Position numbers and translations under genes: made by a program. A model generated the notes under the pieces. That model searched no databases. It had not been told where the DNA came from and worked only from the letters and a program-made list of their open reading frames with translations. DNA of 64,000 nt from Anthoceros angustus (Eukaryota > Plantae > Anthocerotophyta): NCBI GenBank assembly GCA_010909165.1, contig VJWM01000016.1, positions 620,001-684,000 of the forward strand. Reading direction: 5' to 3'. Below, piece by piece: positions 21,271-34,200 of this stretch; position 1 is the first letter of the stretch, and every line of letters begins with the position of its first letter.

Positions 21271-22609
21271 TAGGACGTGAGTAAGTGATGCGTGTGCATG
21301 ATGCGGGGAAGAAGGGAAGGAAAAGCGTGGAAGGTGAAGGCCAGTCGTGAAGGAAGGCAGAACCCGGTGGAGAGAAGGAAGATGGAGGAAGGTGCCAAAC
21401 AGGGGAGCGTCACCGTCAAGTGATGCCGGAGGCAACGTGGATGGTGGGGATCATGGAGGTGTGATGGCAGTGCCACCGACAAGGCGTATCACACGATCCG
21501 TGTCAAAAGCGTGAGTAGGGTGGCAACCCATCGAGAGATTGAATGCTATTCGCTTGCTGCGTAATTGTGGAAGTGGTGATTTGGCAGCCTATGGGGCCGA
21601 GGAAGGGCTAGCCATTGAGGCTAGTGGGTCGAATGCCGCCACGAAGGTGGACCACACCAGACGAAACGAGGAGGTCCGAGCGAAGAGGGTCAAGCAAAAG
21701 ACAACGGTGTTGAAGGCGAGGAGTCGAGTCGGACGGTGGCGAAGGGGTGTAGGCGCAAGTGACATAGGAATGGTTGGTACCATCTATGGGTAGGGGCCGT
21801 TTGTGGAGGGGAATGTAAATGGTCGAGATGTTTTCTCGGACGATGGAGTCGCGCATGGGTGGACCGGTGATGGTCAATTAGCAACAAACAAGAGGGAATT
21901 GGTCCGCCCACCTTTGTAGCCCGGCATTGACATGGCCTCTTGTGAAAGTGGTTATAGAGGTCATTTGGATAGGTGTAGGAAGATGTGGAGGAACCACAGA
22001 AACCATTGGTGTTGGTCAAGAGTCACCAAGTGACGTCGCGTCGCCGATTCAGTTCAGAGGCACATGTTGGTGGTGCACGCCAGACGCATATGCCCATATC
22101 ACGTGGAGTTCGTATTGCATCGGGAAACAAAGGCAAGGGATAGAGGGGATTGAAGTGTCCAAAAATTTGATTTAAATTGTCAATAAAATCAAACACTTAG
22201 ATATGTAAGGTATGAGAGTGACGTAAGGGTTAGCACATATATATTATTATATAAACAAGTCTTGATGCCTATATACGTACGTATATACGTATACAAAGAG
22301 GCCTGTAAATACACTAATATAATAGAAGTATAACAGATGGATGTGTACATATAAACGTACACATACTTATGTCTTGAAGCCTACAAACATATATATGTAT
22401 ATTGAGTATATGCAAAGGAGGTAAAAGGAAGGAAGAACTAGAGAGAGGTGTAACAAGCAAGTTGAAAGAGGAATAGTGGAAGAGTATAAAATGGTGTGAT
22501 AGGGGAGGTCCTTCTCACCATGAAGGAGGAGGAGAAGTGAAAGAGTATAAAAGGGTGTGATAAGGGGCAATAAATAGGGGAGGGTGAGGGAGAGGAGAGA
22601 GACCAAGTA

Positions 22610-22986
22610 TTGTGTTAAGATGGGGTGAGAAGCTGGATAAGAAAAGGACACCTTGAACACCAAGCCACCATAAAGTGTTGCAATATTGAAGTGGTACATG
22701 AAGTGAGAGACCAAGCATTGTGTTAGGATGGTGGGAGAAGGAAGAGAAAGAATGGACCAACTTAACACCAAGCCATCAAACCATGCTGGAAGTTGGAAGT
22801 GGGAAATTATTAACAATGCTTGTGAGAGAGGGGGTGTACCCAGAAGGGGGAGGGGGGAAGAGATAGTGTCAGGTTCGTGTTAAGATGGCAGCACCAAACG
22901 GGGACAGAACTAACAAACTTAATACCAACCCTCCAAAACATGTTGCAATGTGGAAGTGTAACAAAAATTGCAACATCCATCAGAAT
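22610..22986. repeat. Right subterminal repeats (TGTTGCAA, GTGTTAAGAT, TGTAACA)
   Basis: Same motif family as the left end. Confidence 0.75.
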
Positions 22987-24229: not shown

Positions 24230-27160
24230 GAAGTTGTATTTCAAGGCCAAGGCTCTTTCATTTTCTTACGTCAAGTCCAAGGTTTTGAGGTACCGCTTTT
24301 GGCGCACTCATAGTGTAGACCGCCTGTGGTGTCGTTCCTGCGCTACTATTTGTTTTCGCGCCGCTTAAGGGCTTCTGTGGTCTCCAAGGCTTCGACGTGT
24401 TGAGTTCTAGTTTCGGTGCCATTGTTCTTTACGCCTGCTTCCAAGGCTAAGGCCTTCGTGCCGTGTCCTTCAAGGCCTAGGTGTTCGTGCCCGCTCGAAG
24501 GCTAAGTGTTTGTTCAAGTTTTCTGTGCTCGCCTGCCGACGGCCTTTGTTCAAGGTTCTTTCGTGCTCGCCCAAGGCATGCCTTTTCGTTGTTTTGTTCA
24601 AGGCCAAGGTCCGCCGAAAGTTCTTTCAAGGCCAAGGTCGTTTTGTCTTTGTTTTGGTTCTTCAAAGGCGGGGTTTCCATGTCCAAGATCAAGGTGTCTC
24701 TGCACCTAACGCCCGTGTTTTTGCGTCAAGGCCAAGGTGTTTTGGCACCGGCGCGTGTTCGCTTTAGGGTGAAGGCCCTTTGCTCAATTCGGTTTCTTTT
24801 GCGCTTTTATGTTGTTTTGTTCGCTTTCTTGTTCTTTCCATTGTTGTTTTGGCTTCGCTTTTGTGCGGTTTTGGTCTCGATTGTCCTGTGGCCGTATGTT
24901 TTGGCTCGCTCGGGTCTTTGTTTTCGCTTTGTTTTCGTATGTCGCCGTCATACGCGGCGTATGCCTTGTTCTTTTAGGGAATGACGCATGCATAGATGCG
25001 ATACGCTACGAATTCTTTGTTTTGTTCGCTTTAGGGTGAAGGCCAAGGTGTTTTTGTTTTTGTTGCGCTTGGCTTAGTTTGTAAGGTCACCGCATGCATA
25101 GATGTTTTCGCTTGTTTTCGTTTTTTGCGCCGGTTCGTTTTTATGAAAACGACCAGTAACTCTCTTCGACTTAGAGCTTTCGAGGTTTTGTGGTTGCAGC
25201 TTGGCTTAGTTTGTAAGGTCAGCTGCATGGTGTGATGATTTTACTCCTCTGTCAGCGTCTTCTTTGTTTCATTGTCTTCTTACCATCTTGCTTTTTTTGA
25301 TGCAGTCAAGTTCTCCCGAAAATTTGAACTCTTAGTTCGGCACCCAGCTTGGTACGTAATTGACAGAGCAGTACTGTTCATTTGTGTCCAGTTTCACCCA
25401 GCTTTGTACGCAATCGATGTAGTCTTGTTCATTGTCTTCTTACTATCTGTTCGCTCTGATGCAGTCAAGTTTTCCCGCCAAAGTTGGACTCTCAGTTCGG
25501 TTCCCAACCTGGTACGTTATTGACAACGTCACCGTTTGTTGAATTCTGTGGTTTTGGTTATTATTGTACGTGCATTGTCAGGCTTCAATCCGTTTCTGTC
25601 TCATTCTTATTCTAAGGTCCTTGCTTTGATGCAGACAATCTGCCTGGACGTATAAGGCGTTTTGTTCGGGTGTAACCCTGCATATGGTATGTGAACTGAT
25701 TTTAAACTTGATGATTTCTCCTCATTGATAATTACCTCGTTGTCTTTTAACGTAGCTGTGAGTTCTCTGTGAATAATCTAATTCTTTACCTGTGTGTGTA
25801 GGCTTTATTGTTCATCGTGTGAAGGGTTGACCGCCAACATTCTCGATTCTCGTGCTCGTCAAGGCTCATGCCTTTTGGTGTTTGTTCAAGGCCAAGGTCT
25901 CGAAAGTTCTTTCAAGGCCAAGGTCGCTTTGCCGCTTTGTTTTGGTTCTTCAAAGGCGGGGTTTCCATGTCCAAGATCAAGGTGTCTCTGCACCTAACGC
26001 CCGTGTTTTTGTCGGCCCGGGCCAAGGTGTTTTGGCACCGGCGGTGTGTGTTCGCTTTAGGGTGAAGGCCTTCGCTCAATTCGGTTTCTTTTCGCTTTTA
26101 TGTTGTTTCCGTTTTCGCTTGTTCTTTCCATTGTTGTTTTGGCTTCGCTTTTGTGCGGTTTTGGTCTCGATTGTCCTGTGGCCGTGTTTTGGCTCGCTCG
26201 GGTCTTTGTTTTGCACGCTTGTATGTCGTGTCAGATACGTTTCGCGCCTCTTGTCTTTTAGGGAATGACCGCATGCATAGATGTTTTCTCGATTCTTGTC
26301 TCATCGCTTTTGTTATTCTTGTTGCGTTGTTTCGAGTGTTCGTGTTTTTGTGGACGCTTGGTTCCGCCGCTTTTATGAAACGACCAGCAGAATTATTTTC
26401 TCCATAGCTTTGAACTTTTTAGGCTTAGATAAAGGTCACCGCATGTCGTGGTGATTGTGCTCTTGTATGCCAGACTGAGTGCATGTGATTCTAGTGAGTG
26501 TTTCTTGTTTTGACCAGGCCGGTTCGCTTTTATGAAACGACCAGTAACTCTCTCGACTTAAAGCTTCGAGGTTTTGTGGTTGCGCTTGGCTTAGTTTGTA
26601 AGGTCACCGCATGGTGTGATTTTACTCCTTAGCGTCTTCTTTGTTTCATTGTCTTCTTACCATCTTGCTTTTTGATGCGCCAAGTTCTCCAAAATTTGAA
26701 CTCTTAGTTCGCACCCAGTACGTAATCGTAAATAAGATCGTTCATTTGTGTCTAGTTTCACCTTTTTGTACGCAATCGATGTAGTCTTGTTCATTGTCTT
26801 CTTACTATCCGCTCGCCTGGTCAAGTTTTCCGCCAAAGTTGGACTCTCGAGTTCGGCACCAACCACGCGTTATTGACAACGCCACCGCTTTGTTGAATTG
26901 TGTGGTTTTGGTTATTATTACGTGCATTGTCGGCTTCAATCGTCTCATTCTTATTCTAAGGTTCTTGCTTTGATGCATACCGGACGATATAGCTTTTGTT
27001 CGGTGTAACCTCGCATATGGTATGTGAACTTTTAAACTTGATGATTTCTCCTCATTGATAATTACCTCGTTGTCTTTTAACGTAGTGAGTTCTCTGTGAA
27101 TAATCTAATTCTTTACCCGTGTAGGCTTTATTGTTCATCGTGTGAAGGGTTGACCAACAT
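24230..27160 (+). repeat. T-rich leader with more than 20 CAAGG / CAAGGCCAAGG motifs and a ~1.35-kb duplication (24500-25830 / 25850-27160)
   Basis: Read directly. Confidence 0.8.
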
Positions 27161-27617
27161 TACGTCTGCATGTGAATCAGGATAACCATTTCGCCTGAAT
27201 TTGAAGTCATGATTAAATCTCGTAGTTTGCGTTGTCTGTTGCGCTGTTTGTGTACTGCGGATAACCTTATTTTTGTTTGTTTTTTTCCTCTTAAATCTAA
27301 CTTGCCGACAAAGTCTTCTATTACAGGAAGTATGTGGGTGTTGTTTGAAAAGGAGTTATCTGTTCTCACTAACCAAAAGTGGAGGGGATTTCAATATTTA
27401 ACAATGTGTATATTCAATGAATGTGTCGTGCCATATCCCCCCCATCCCTATCCTCGTCCTCGATTGTTTTATAATCAATTGTTAGACCCTTCAGCAGGTT
27501 CCTATCTGGAAGTTCTGAACACCATGTAAGTGCTTTCTTTATTTTGTCTTTTTGTCAACTTCCTGCAGGATGTTTGTGTTGTCAAGTTCCTTGACCACTC
27601 AATTCTCGCTTTTGCAG

Positions 27618-30600
27618 ATGGCTCCTAAAAGAAAACCCACTGGGCCTGCTGGGCCGGGAAGAAAACAAGGATCCCTGGCTGAAGTTATGGCCAAGCCATA
27701 TACTAGACAGCGTGTCAACCATGTTCAGATATCGCAACTCATCCGCAGGATGATGGTAAAGTTGATGGTGTCTTGGTGCACTGAAGGAACGACTTAGTTC
27801 CCAAAAGACTTGCCCAAACCGCCAAGGCGATTTTCATCCAAGAAGGACGCTCGGCACCGAGTTTGTTCAAGAGGAGAAGGGTGGACACTCGACCTGTGGC
27901 TTTGGTTGAAGGTCCTCTTGCAGAGATTACTAACTATGTCCCAGTGTCCGAGAGAGGGGTCCAGGTTTGTGGGGAGAATGATTTCTTGATAACTGACGAT
28001 CCCATGGTTGTGAGTGCTGCCAAAACCTGTCTGGAGTCTAGAGATTTGTGCTGCCGTTGAACAGAATGCTTTACAAGGGCGCTTCCATGCCTGTGGTTCC
28101 CGACCGAGTCATCCCTGATCAAGAAGTGCTTGATATGTTTGAGAGGCTAAAGTGTGATGATCCCGAAGATAACTTTGCCATGGGTATGGAGGAAATTGAT
28201 GATGAAGCAATTTTCAGAGAGCAGGGATTTGATCCAATAGTCCCAGAGGGAGCTGTGAATGATGCGTTGAGTGGTGGGGAGGATAGGTCCAAACGGCGTA
28301 ATAACCGTGTCAAGTCGCCTGTGGCCTTTATGAAAGTGAGTGGGGTCAGGGGATGGGATACTCCTGTTGAGGATATTCCTTACAAGGATCTAAATCTTAT
28401 TCTGATACCCTTTTTCCATCAAGTTCGAATCAAGGACAACAGGAGATTTTCTCCGAAGCGTAAGTAGTGATGTTTTTGACTTGTTGATTTTGATAGTTCG
28501 ACTTTCATTCACATGACCGATTTCGATTCTCTCTTGCGTTGATGTCTTTCTTTCGTGGTTTTAACCGAATTTTAACAAGGAAGTGCATCTTGAACCAAAG
28601 CCGGCTTGGTTCGATGTTCGATGATCAACATGTTTCATGGAATTTTCCATGGGTCCTAGGCAGCGTTGGTTGCGTCCATGAAAATCAGCAAGGATCTCGG
28701 AATTGTGTCATGTCGAAAAGAGGTGAAGTTGATTTCTGACGATGATGAGCGACGGATTCTTTCACACAGAGATCATCAATGCTCATTTGGGGGCTCAAAA
28801 AGGTAATATTGTTGGTTTAGGGGTGCACTTTGATTGTTCATTTATGGTTTTAAACCTGGAGGTCTGTCTCTATTGTTTGCGGTGTGCATATTTTTGCATG
28901 ACCAGTTTGGAGTTCGAGGTGGTGAAGAGTTACATAACCGCTCATCGTGACTTCGCTCGCAGATTCAGGAGGACCTTTTGTTCAAGATGTTTTGGTTGTT
29001 TTGTTCATTGTATCTTTGACGACGGTATGTTTTGTTGTTTTGATGTCGTATTAAGCTCGCTTTTATTTGCGGTGTATCAAGAACGGCTTTCAAAAATTAT
29101 AAAGTGGACATGAAGAATTACCAGAGTGAGCATTTCCAAAAGGTCAAGATTTACGAGGATGTTATCGAAACTTTTAGAGTCATATTGAACACTCTCCCAA
29201 GTGGTCTGCAAACGACAAAAATCATCAATTCGGGGTTTTGTTCAATTCAACAATTGATAACCCAAGATCAAATGTAAGTTTTGTTAAGTTTTGTTGTTAT
29301 TGGGCTTAAGTTTTGTGGTTTGTATTTACTAACTGCTTGTTTTTGGCTAGGCTTGGTATGCAAAACTCCGTGTTTCAAAAGGAATGTTGTCAAGGTTCAT
29401 GAAGACCATGGTGAAGCGGTGGGCTCGTTGGCTATTACACCAATAAGAGCTGCCGTGTAACAATGATTACACGCTTGACGATGGCTCGTGCCTTCGATGC
29501 CGGGAGAAGTGTGACCGCCATAAAATGATTTGGATTCTCAAGGTAATATGTCGATGTTCCTGATCAACATGTTTCATGGAATTTTCCATGGGTCCTGTGC
29601 GTTGGTTGCGCCCATGAAAATCGCAAGGATCCTTGGAATTGTGTCATGTCGAAAAGAGGTGAAGTTGATTTCTGACGATGATGAGCGACGGATTCTTTCA
29701 CACAGAGATCATCAATGCTCATTTGGGCGGGGGGCTCAAAAAAGGTAATATTGTTGGTTTAGGGGTGCACTTTGATTGTTCATTTATGGTTTTAAACCTG
29801 GAGGTCTGTCTCTATTGTTTGCAGGTGTGCATATTTTTGCATGACCAGGTTTGGAGTTCGAGGTGGTGAAGAGTTACATAACCTGCTCATCGGGACTTCT
29901 CGTTCTCAGCAGATTCAGGAGGACCTTTTGTTCAGTATGTTTTGGTTGTTTTGTTCATTGTATCTTTGACGTACTGGTATGTTTTGGTTGTTTTGATGTA
30001 TCAAAGCTCGCTTTTATTTGCGGTGTATCAAGAACGGCTTTCAAAAATTATAAAGTGGACATGAAGAATTACCAGAGTGAGCATTTCAAAAAGGTCAAGA
30101 TTTACGAGGATGTTATCGAAACTTTTAGAGTCATATTGAACACTCTCCCAAGTGGTCTGCAAACGACAAAAATCATCAATTCGGGGTTTTGTTCAATTCA
30201 ACAATTGATAACCCAAGATCAAATGTAAGTTTTGTTGTTATTGGGCTTAAGTTTTGTTGTTATTGGGCTTAAGTTTTGTGGTTTGTATTTACTAAGCTTG
30301 TTTTTTTGGCTAGGCTTGGTATGCAAAACTCCGTGTTTCAAAAGGAATGTTGTCAAGGTTCATGAAGACCATGGTCAAGCAAATGGGCTCGTTGGCTATT
30401 ACACCAATAAGAGCCGCCGTAACAATGATTACACGCTTGACGATGGCTCGTGCCTGGCCGGGAGAAGTGTGACCGCCATAAAGATGCTGGATTCTCAAGG
30501 TAATATGTTTTGAAAGCTTGTGACATTTGAGTCCTTTGTATGTTCCTTCCTCGATGTTCTTATATGGTTTGCGATATGACCCGTCAAGCAAAACAGTACA

Positions 30601-32020
30601 GAAGAGTCCTTGTTCTCGGTGAACGCGATCCTATCGGAGCTTTTGAACGAAGAATCAATCGGATGCGGATGATTTAAGGGTGTTCTTCCGTCAACTGCCC
30701 TCAATGTGACTCAAATTGTATTTTCTAGTCACCAAGATCGCACTTGCGAGTGCAACAGTTAACAATGTAAGTGTTTGAGATTTGTTGCAAGTTTTGTAGG
30801 GACTTGTTTTTGTGTGTTAGGTCTCGTAGCAACTCGTTGTTCATCATGAAAGCACCTTTGAACAATGTCGACCGAATCGAGTTTTCCGCACCATTTGGTC
30901 CACTGTCTCAAGTTCGTTGGTATTGTCGTTCCTTGCTGCACCGCCATGTTGGATCTGTTTAATCATACCGGTCTCTGTTGTTATGGGTGTGGGAGACGTG
31001 TTTTGGTTGCAAACATACCTCGAAAGCGGGCCAAGGCATCGATGGATAATGCAACAACATCGGGTGTTCTAGTGAAAATTCCATATGTTGACAAGGTTGA
31101 TTCTTTGTCCTTGTTTTGTTTTCACTTCTTTTGGAGTTTCGATTATGTTTATCTTGGCGTTGTGAATCCTGCGACTAGTGGAAGTTTCATCGTCCCTCAT
31201 TTCAACATTGATACACAGGGAAGTGGATGCGTGGTCCCTCCGTTGGAGGGCATTGTGCATAGTGAGTGTGATCACCATCCGGGTTAACCAGATGTAAATG
31301 TGTGGTAGCACCTCGATATTGTATTGCACTGGGATCGCAAATGGAAATGGAAGTGGCTTTGAGCGCTTGCGAGATTGCGCGAGTACGGAATTGGAGTATG
31401 ATAGATGTAAACAGAATTGGAGTTTCAACAAAAAAGGATTTGGAGGCTCTTATAGAGAGACAGAGGCGAAAGCGCTTGAATTACGAGTCTCTAAGCAAAG
31501 AGAGAAAGCCCTTGAGATCGAGGGAGAAATGTGGAGAGGAGACAAGAGCACATTAAGCATCAAGAGAAATCAAGCAAGCAGATAGAGCAAGCAAGAGGTT
31601 CAAGACGCAGTGAAAAGAGAACAGAGCGTAAGAATGTGTCTCGAGATATTTGCACCGCTATCTCGCGAAAATCCGTCGATTGGTAAGTTTTCTTATGCTC
31701 TTTATTAATCGCAGACATTGAAAATCAATGGTTGTATTTTATTAGGTTGTCACCTTGCGTGAAGCGGACAATTTCGCCCAAGTCCTCGCCTTCATCAATT
31801 GGTTGCCAAGAATGATGTACAACCGCCAATCAAGCCAAGTGGTCGTGAAAATTACGCTTTCAATCAGTATAATTGTACAATCAATTTCCTAAATAAGGTG
31901 AGTATCATTTCCTAAGTATTTGCTATGATTATTTCAGGTTTTCTAGTATCGCCTAATCACGGTTTGTGTGTTGCTTTGTTTTGTAGGTTCCATTGTTGTT
32001 GAAGTAGAGTTCAATCTAGC
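27618..32020 (+). pseudogene. Intron-containing Crypton/DUF3504-type tyrosine recombinase, frameshifted and internally duplicated in this sequence
   Basis: ATG after TTTTGCAG (MAPKRKP). Then DLNLILIPFFHQVRIKDNRRFSP (~28390); FHGS.AALVASMKISKDLG...ISDDDERRIL; QFGVRGGEELHNL (catalytic R, 28915 and 29859); FKNYKVD; AWYAKLRVSKGMLSRFMKTM; GYYTNKSCRVTMITRL (29436); VT(G)HKDAGFSR, intron, then YD (~30470-30580). Some motifs need 1-bp indel correction. The 3' end is approximate. Confidence 0.85.
28600..30505. repeat. ~0.95-kb tandem duplication of the recombinase catalytic exons (28600-29545 / 29545-30505)
   Basis: Both copies carry the RGG and NKSCR boxes with different indels. Confidence 0.88.
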
Positions 32021-34200
32021 GAGTTCAATCTATTCGTATTTACTCTTCATTAGTTGAATTTGTATTTCATGCCATTCGGATATACAGAAACTCGCAAAGA
32101 AAAGGTTTCTTTGTTGGTTTTTGTATATCCCGGATCCGCATGAATATTATTTAATGAAAATGTTTTTGTCGATTAGCGATTTTGGTGGGATTTCTAGAAT
32201 GAGCTTCTAGACCCACCGGTATTCACTTGGTCGCCATGTTTTCTACTCTAGTGCTCTATTTTCTACCTTGATGGTAGATGATTTTACCCCACTTGTATGG
32301 TTCATTGTTTTGTACCTTGATGGTAGATGATTTTCTACTATAATCAGAATGAATTTTACTGGTAAAATAATGACCAAAAGGTCAATTTTCTCTCTAAAAA
32401 TTTACCGCACTCAAAAACTAGGCGCTGGCCGAGGCCCCGTGACGAGGTCAGACCTTACGACCTATGCAGTCGAGAAGCATTGGATTATGCTCGATGGACA
32501 TCTGCAATGATAGCCGCCAGAGCTCCAAGCAGTGGCACCAATCTTTCCATCGCGAGGGAAGAGTCGGGGAGAGAGGTGTGCGAGGTCTGCAGCAGAATGA
32601 GCTGGGGAGACTGTGTGCTCAAGTGTCACCGGGCAACCTACAAGTTCCCGTGCTTTTTCTTGCAGGCACAGGTGAATGTGCCTAAACCAATAAGCTGGCT
32701 TTTTCCGGAACCGGAACCGGGCACATGCGAAATCGATCTTAGACCCTCGGTCCGTTGAAGACCGAAGTGGACCCACGAGCGCTGGACTGGTCTGTTGAGA
32801 TGGGGGGATCTGGGGAGGGAGATATGCTCCGCTAAGGGGAGGCTTGCCAGAGTAAGTCCCTTGAAGTATGCCTCGGCGGAGTTGGTCCATCGAGGAGTGG
32901 CTTGGCGGGATTGTTCGACCGGGCGAGGTTCTAATGAATCTTGCTGGGGTGTACGGGGCGGTGGAAGAAGGTCACCGGAATGATGAGTTACGACATGGCA
33001 GTTGCGGTGGCCTAGGGCTAGTAGTAGGCAGCAACAAGCCAGGCGCCATCATAAATGGTGGCGTGAGTTGCAGATTTTGCGATATGGCTTGCACAGATAT
33101 AGGCTGGTTAGATTAGGGTGAGTTGGCAGGCCCAGCCAATTTTGCTAGCGAGATATAAGCCTTAGTGGGGCTATATAACGAGGCCTTGGTGTCCAAAACC
33201 AGGAAACTATACCTTGTGCCAATTTCGCGCTCTATGTGCTCGTGCAGTCTTGCGGTCGAGGAGCTGAGTGTGTTCCTGCATGCGTCATGTTGTAAGATTG
33301 ATTAGTGGTAGGGGAATGCGTCGAGAGCTCTGGTGACGAGCTCCTCTAACACGTTTGATGGGTGCAAACTAGGATCAGTCCTGAGCTCAGGTAGCACTAT
33401 GGGGGCAACCTTCGGCGTGGAGCCATCCTTGGTGGTGGCTGGGGCAGAGGCCATGGGGTTATAGGCTAAGAAGCCACTACCTCACGGAACGCGAAGCAGT
33501 CGGAAGGAGCAAAGGCAATCCTGTGTTAATACGTCGGCGTGTTGGTATTTCTGGTACTAATTGTATGTGAGTAAGGGAGAAGGAAGGAAGGTTTGTGGGC
33601 CTGTGCATTGCATGGGAGTTACTGTTGAGCGGAGTCGAGATTTGTGAAGTGGAAGATGTAAAGCTAAGGAGGTATGTGCGTAGAGGCACTAGTGTATGAG
33701 GAACGCGTTGCTAAACCTGTTCCTGTCCGCGGGACCTTAAATGGTGTTTTGAGACACCATTTGTATGTGCCACATGCATATGCATATGAACAATGAGAGT
33801 AGTATGTAAGTCGCGGCGGCATGGCAAGAGATAACATAGTAATAAAACTGGCGACCGGGTCTCGAGACACAGGTTGTCGACCGGGTTCGTTTTCGTGTAG
33901 GTTGTAGTCCCTAGGTAATTTTCCAGAGGAGAATTGTCCAGATGGGGATTTTCGGTTAGGATAGCCCAAAGGCCTGAGGAAGCTTGTGTTTGTACATATG
34001 CTTTGAGTAATGAGAAGTATGCCACTATTTTTATAGATTGTCGACCTGACCGGACCGCGTCGCGGGTAAGTCGACAGGGGGAAGTCTAGGCCAGACCTGA
34101 CCCGCCTTCGCATTGTCCAATTCTCACATAGACTGACTTGGCTTAGTCTCTGCACTTCAACGCGAGCATTAGACGCTGCTGAGGCTGACTCCTCGGTTCC

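Follow-up and report, generated by a model that had tools for sequence, protein, structure and literature searches.

A probable non-functional, internally duplicated Crypton-like tyrosine recombinase gene with lysine in box II in Anthoceros angustus

Introduction

Does a series of short, interrupted reading frames in the genome of Anthoceros angustus (Anthocerotophyta) derive from a Crypton-type tyrosine recombinase gene, and could such a gene still work? The question is raised by a window of 64,000 nucleotides (nt) from GenBank assembly GCA_010909165.1 (contig VJWM01000016.1, positions 620,001 to 684,000 of the forward strand; all coordinates below are positions in this window). From 27618 to ~31700 its plus strand carries short open pieces in series, with most of the expected recombinase motifs in the right order and with a lysine where tyrosine recombinases would be expected to have the first histidine of box II. 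We conclude that the locus is probably a non-functional, internally duplicated copy of a multi-copy, intron-containing Crypton/DUF3504-like tyrosine recombinase gene of a non-seed land plant. The lysine is treated separately below, as are the readings that compete with this one.

Crypton DNA transposons with a DUF3504-type recombinase include CryptonA/S/I and Glomhopper (Kojima & Jurka 2011, PMC3212892; PMC13465315). Cryptons have been described from fungi, animals, stramenopiles and Chlamydomonas; no description of a land-plant Crypton was found in the literature that we searched. In the Crypton family, the recombinase motifs typically follow one another in the order F[FY]..VR.KD, G.RGG.E, ER.SK, W[FY]...MK and YTN.S.R.T.

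Results

Motif series and exon structure

The motifs recovered at the locus, with their coordinates, are listed in Table 1. To obtain a null expectation we used 300 composition-preserving block shuffles of the window and four motif patterns, which were defined only after the sequence had been seen. Under this null, the patterns are expected 0.01, 0.16, 2.3 and 0.003 times per 64 kilobases (kb) in six frames. At the locus the same four patterns are collinear on one strand within a span of 1.05 kb, and because of this collinearity, set against the shuffle expectation, we do not attribute the motif series to chance. The arginine of box I is present at the motif level in its G-x-R-x-x-E context in both of the tandem units described below (GVRGGEE), and ERLSK follows ~33 residues past this arginine in the spliced reading (28-35 residues were looked for), with a frame slip right after its lysine. 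Most of the motifs that a preliminary description, made from the letters of the window, had listed for this locus are thus collinear on the plus strand, with two exceptions: the TGH is absent, and the catalytic tyrosine is a candidate.

The open pieces are closed by GT donors (GTAAGT at 28461, 29275/30226 and 31684; GTAATA at 28803/29745 and 30500) and are separated by T-rich spacers that carry AG acceptors; splice-like signals continue to ~31900. The first long coding exon encodes a basic N-terminus (MAPKRKP..), an acidic stretch and then FFHQVRIKD. It is split over three open reading frame (ORF) segments (27618-27794 in frame f0, 27785-28057 in f2 and 28042-28464 in f1), with frame changes near 27790 and near 28050, and one of its open segments, at 141 codons, is the longest of the region. 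Upstream of this exon, a GTAAGT donor at ~27527 and the ttttgcag acceptor before the ATG at 27618 suggest a 5' intron of 91 nt, preceded by an exon that does not code.

A repeated family with no second enzyme

Repeated copies of the gene are indicated by read depth and by many sequence variants; the window itself holds one copy. From the DNA run, ~1,200 short contigs were recovered at ≥85% identity. Summed contig depth is 300-1000 over 27.7-32.2 kb, compared with ~18 at 27400-27560 and ~10 per single contig. Comparing the piled depth with that of a single contig suggests ~30-100 paralogues, which is a rough reading that applies to copies of at least 85% identity. The step in depth at ~27.6-27.7 kb is the sole hint of an element boundary. 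On the other side, summed contig depth reaches up to ~2100 at 32069-32200 (2-3x the level within the gene), which suggests that a commoner repeat adjoins the gene on its 3' side or overlaps it there.

The paralogues differ from the assembled copy within its first exon. Single-base deletions at 28165 (77% of depth) and at 28403 (97% of depth) would disrupt the 141-codon exon, whose frame is open in the assembled copy, and the presence of frame-breaking deletions in most of the depth suggests that most paralogues are dead and that they multiplied after inactivation. A further contig, with a depth of ~111, omits 124 nt from the acidic stretch in the first exon (28205-28330); the omitted segment has the ends AG..TT and is not an intron, and its depth points to a sizeable paralogue subfamily with that deletion. 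No RNA contig was found at the locus in the one RNA run analysed.

A Pfam search of 20 neighbouring open segments, the tail ORFs among them, gave no meaningful match. For open segments of ≥100 amino acids (aa) across 22.5-35 kb, no family reached the curated cut-off, and neither a reverse transcriptase nor any other enzyme domain was detected within ~5 kb, although broken domains could escape such a search. A retroelement of the DIRS/Ngaro type was rejected, as no reverse transcriptase lies nearby. The recombinase is thus the only enzyme recognised, as expected of a Crypton; this is weak evidence, again because broken domains could escape.

The same data bear on a different origin, in which a recombinase-derived host gene family, or a gene of a larger composite repeat, was copied by segmental duplication or as cargo. 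Many introns are unusual in an autonomous DNA transposon, the frame-breaking deletions common to most paralogues place their multiplication after inactivation, and read depth is still high beyond 32200, all of which would suit such an origin. However, the spread of dead copies by non-autonomous means is ordinary for transposons, the search of the flanks revealed neither another gene nor another domain within 5 kb, and broken copies without expression speak against a domesticated function. We consider this origin unlikely.

Internal duplication and lesions

The favoured reading, a decayed Crypton-like gene, includes an internal duplication. The two units in Table 1 arose from one 0.94-kb tandem duplication within the gene, which takes in four exons from MK through box II. 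They are 92.8% identical and differ mostly by indels of 1-12 nt. In one short-read contig, 28611 is joined to 29552 with nothing in between, as would be expected of a single-unit paralogue. In the intron of unit 2, a 22-nt sequence (TAAGTTTTGTTGTTATTGGGCT) is repeated 2.6 times (30226-30283), and it is repeated fewer times in unit 1; the uneven counts suggest that the units went on diverging through small duplications.

Unit 1 contains an in-frame TAG in its MK exon (28657-28659) and has lost the AG acceptor of its FGVRGGEELHN exon. In unit 2 the MK exon is without the stop and FGVRGGEELHNL has a TTTGCAG acceptor, and deletions of 2 nt and 4 nt follow the box II arginine of YYTNKSRR. Three frame slips are common to both units: one follows LHN(L/R), one falls within the A5 run downstream of ERLSK, and one separates ..TMVK from GLVGYY. 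The phase of the donor after ..ITQDQ disagrees with that of the acceptor before WYAKL. No splicing of the assembled gene gives one open frame. Splicing and correction of indels, the procedure by which the preliminary description arrived at the protein, does recover most of the motifs, but it glosses over the clash of splice phases, no fewer than six changes of frame and the in-frame TAG at 28657.

Part of this damage could lie in the assembly. If the frameshifts were mostly assembly indels, most of the gene would be intact in the plant itself, and it would belong to a still-active land-plant Crypton with a native KxxR. A variant with an additional T after 27790, which accounts for 39% of depth, puts the first two ORF segments in one frame, and this mended frame indicates that some members of the family do have the long N-terminal exon; several breaks also fall in homopolymers, such as the A5 run at 29093 and 30044 that is common to both units. 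The in-frame stop, the lost acceptor and the 0.94-kb duplication with its 7% divergence, on the other hand, are not assembly indel errors, and neither these nor the clashing phases are errors of the homopolymer kind. Most of the paralogue depth has frame-breaking deletions in the longest exon, and no RNA contig maps at the locus. A largely intact gene is, in our judgement, improbable. Since the copy is broken and no RNA was found, we take it to do nothing now, and it likely has no biological role.

Searches and C-terminal motifs that weigh against the assignment

Several results count against the favoured reading, and we gather them here. The database queries taken from the gene were stop-free pieces of 37-141 aa, and negatives obtained with them have little power. 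A Pfam search of ten gene pieces gave no match, and DUF3504 (PF12012) did not match the pieces from ERLSK to box II even at E-values up to 10. Searches of PHROGs and NCBIfam (up to ten pieces per library) gave nothing meaningful, and phmmer searches of the pieces against PDB gave nothing. The 141-aa exon, which is not catalytic, was searched with phmmer against 1.84 billion representatives and gave 0 matches. Neither the ERLSK/NYK piece nor the box II piece found a match in word-indexed searches, under a length filter that excludes full-length relatives, and two metagenome scans yielded no confirmed relative. We also compared P1 Cre and 46 of its relatives with the spliced reading, in which an X was placed at each break. 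The Smith-Waterman score against Cre was at shuffle level, and hhalign against the Cre family gave a probability of 0.5%, which is not significant; the stretch that hhalign aligned, likewise not significant, sets EELHNL.HRDFSFSAD on Cre 175-190, right after Arg173, the expected place of box I. Recognition by DUF3504 or Phage_integrase profiles, which the preliminary description had proposed as a check, did not occur: no profile or database search recognised any of these short pieces. In view of the lack of a significant match, it is the motifs that carry the assignment to DUF3504 and to the tyrosine recombinases.

The C-terminal catalytic motifs are a second difficulty. No TGH occurs in any plus-strand frame of 27000-33500. 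The box II exon ends in ..MARAFDAGRSVTAIKMLDSQ at a phase-1 donor; in unit 2 the end reads ..AIKMLDSQ (Gln at 30496-30498) at G/GTAATA. IKMLDSQ is the positional counterpart of I-M-x-x-T-G-H, and the second histidine is counted as absent or replaced. A brute-force scan of acceptors found that splicing 30499 to 31374 would give Q-DCASTELEY-DR, in which a tyrosine (31397-31399) stands nine residues after the glutamine at 30496; the acceptor of this splice is a poor one. Left unspliced, the f2 ORF (..CTGI..STELEYDR) has an arginine at 31370, nine residues before the same tyrosine. The tyrosine of LEYDR is our candidate for the catalytic residue, at the price of either a poor acceptor or a spacing without explanation. 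The CTGI upstream of it may be the source of the TGH in the preliminary description.

The ends of the element, its target site and its excision are putative only. Furthermore, some frameshifts are possibly assembly errors, and "dead" perhaps overstates the condition of this particular locus.

That the locus is not a tyrosine recombinase at all, its motifs being coincidental in an unrelated decayed multi-exon gene, would agree with the negative profile and database searches and with patterns set post hoc, but we regard it as very unlikely, as four rare motifs in canonical order and spacing on one strand lie far beyond the shuffles and pieces of 37-141 aa are not long enough to score significantly against databases of this size.

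Other leads were weaker. In a protein atlas, the NYK exon gave weak leads at 0.88-0.90 to eukaryotic fragments, commonest in Mucoromycota and Mollusca. N-terminal piggyBac fragments, to which the first exon pointed at 0.88 in the same atlas, were rejected on account of low recognition, few common features and the lack of a DDE domain.

Lysine in box II

Box II reads KSCR in unit 1 and KSRR in unit 2 instead of HxxR, and the arginine is present. The lysine codon is AAG in both units, two base changes from either histidine codon, and neither lysine codon is hit by variants among the best-supported short-read differences listed, which is partial evidence for a lysine common to the family. In the assembly, this copy truly has lysine in place of the first histidine. 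It had been argued that a base error is unlikely because both copies read lysine. Random base-call error is indeed excluded by this agreement; however, the units belong to one duplication and share one ancestor, so that the two lysine readings are not independent witnesses and amount to a single observation.

Lysine at the first-histidine position is probably present in most paralogues and may be common to the whole family, and an active enzyme may have made use of it. A broader proposal, that the locus represents a land-plant Crypton lineage with a native topoisomerase-IB-like KxxR, lacking the usual second histidine and possibly still mobile in better-preserved copies, is doubtful; if true, it would add a new active-site variant to the recombinases of eukaryotic transposons.

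The 3' blocks and the surroundings of the gene

Between the second unit and the purine-rich block (Table 1), LLHRHVGSV*SY (30933-30968) is a string of the form H-x8-Y with an internal stop; by our own estimate, ~1 H-x8-Y is expected by chance. The purine-rich block continues in frame after the candidate tyrosine and closes at a consensus donor. Purines (A+G) make up 64% of 31291-31690, and K/R/E/D account for 32-46% of the peptide in all three plus-strand frames, whose open segments are 56-95 codons long. As charged peptides arise in every frame, base composition explains the charge, and the basic/coiled-coil C-terminal extension that had been proposed at 31300-31680 lies in purine-rich DNA that yields charged peptides whatever the frame.

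The tandem repeat upstream of the gene has 39% T and a strong negative AT skew, and its ~1.33-kb copies contain blocks of 40-77 nt that are 95-100% identical at a spacing of 1288-1385 nt. Pfam searches of its open frames gave no match. Short tandem arrays at 32258-32338 (23-nt unit, 3.4 copies) and 22597-22802 (108-nt unit, 1.9 copies) flank the low-GC block that contains the gene, and GC content climbs from ~0.34 to 0.55 at ~32400.

Table 1. Features of the recombinase locus and its upstream flank, in window coordinates
Feature	Position	Strand	Details
T-rich tandem repeat, two copies of ~1.33 kb	24400..27100		directly upstream of the gene; possibly part of the element
First long coding exon	27618..28460	+	~280 codons; ATG after ttttgcag acceptor; GTAAGT donor at 28461
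FFHQVRIKD	28411-28437	+	end part of first long exon
Tandem unit 1	28611..29551	+	exons MK..ISDDDE, FGVRGGEELHN, ERLSK/NYK, WY..YYTNKSCR
Tandem unit 2	29551..30508	+	same four exons as unit 1; box II is YYTNKSRR
MK..G..ISDDDE	~28680 and ~29620	+	one per tandem unit
FGVRGGEELHN	28905 and 29849	+	GVRGGEE from 28909 and 29853
ERLSK	29081 and 30032	+	1-nt frame slip, then NYKVDMKNY
WYAKLRVSKGMLSRFMK	29354 and 30317	+	slot of WYAKL..MK in the motif series
YYTNKSCR	from 29433	+	Lys AAG 29445-29447; Arg 29454-29456
YYTNKSRR	from 30397	+	Lys AAG 30409-30411
T-rich stretch, putative long intron and/or lost exons	30500..31297	+	no convincing His-II/Tyr box
Purine-rich block, overlapping open frames	31298..31683	+	f2 ORF 31298-31582; GTAAGT donor at 31684
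More exon-like pieces, possibly coding	31684..32020	+	acceptor at 31714; GTGAGT donor at 31898

Discussion

The order and spacing of the motifs, the multi-copy family and the lack of any other enzyme fit the proposal of a plant-lineage Crypton, although green plants, taken broadly, were already known to have a Crypton (PMC9977147). In an intact relative, the recombinase would be the sole enzyme of a cut-and-rejoin DNA transposon and would bind the ends of the element. Cleavage would be carried out by a tyrosine nucleophile with help from the arginine of GVRGG, the lysine of ERLSK and the arginine of KSCR, after which the element would be excised as a circle and reinserted at a short matching target. 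The copy described here would subsequently have acquired the 0.94-kb internal duplication of four exons, the in-frame stop and many small indels.

The locus resembles Cryptons in that the recombinase is the sole enzyme, and Glomhoppers in being a multi-copy family in which truncated or intron-containing copies are numerous. It differs from described Cryptons in its land-plant host, in the lysine in place of the first histidine, in the lack of a recognisable TGH and in the lack of a PF12012 match for each piece. Within the green lineage, CryptonF-1_cRei of Chlamydomonas reinhardtii is active, with insertions, excisions and a CAYCG target observed (PMC9977147). It is likewise a tyrosine-recombinase transposon and demonstrates that Viridiplantae can harbour active Cryptons, whereas the copy described here is probably dead; the two are likened by lineage and type, not by sequence.

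Variation at the first-histidine site is not unprecedented. In Starship captains, which are also tyrosine recombinases of eukaryotic transposons, the first histidine of HxxR is replaced in whole clades, with YxxR in clades 1 and 3 (PMC11162782). Starships are fungal, giant and cargo-carrying, their captains are of the DUF3435 type, and the replacement is tyrosine, not lysine. Type IB topoisomerases carry lysine at the first-histidine position of the recombinases, next to the second arginine, as KxxR (PMC2747268), in agreement with the preliminary description. They are relaxing enzymes, and the likeness is that of one residue, with no sequence similarity beyond the active-site pattern.

A multi-copy Crypton family in a non-seed plant would widen the known range of Cryptons. 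The contribution of this locus is the lysine at the first-histidine position which, if family-wide and functional, would be the second natural replacement at that site in the recombinases of eukaryotic transposons, after the YxxR of Starships, and would also be a link to the active site of topoisomerase IB.

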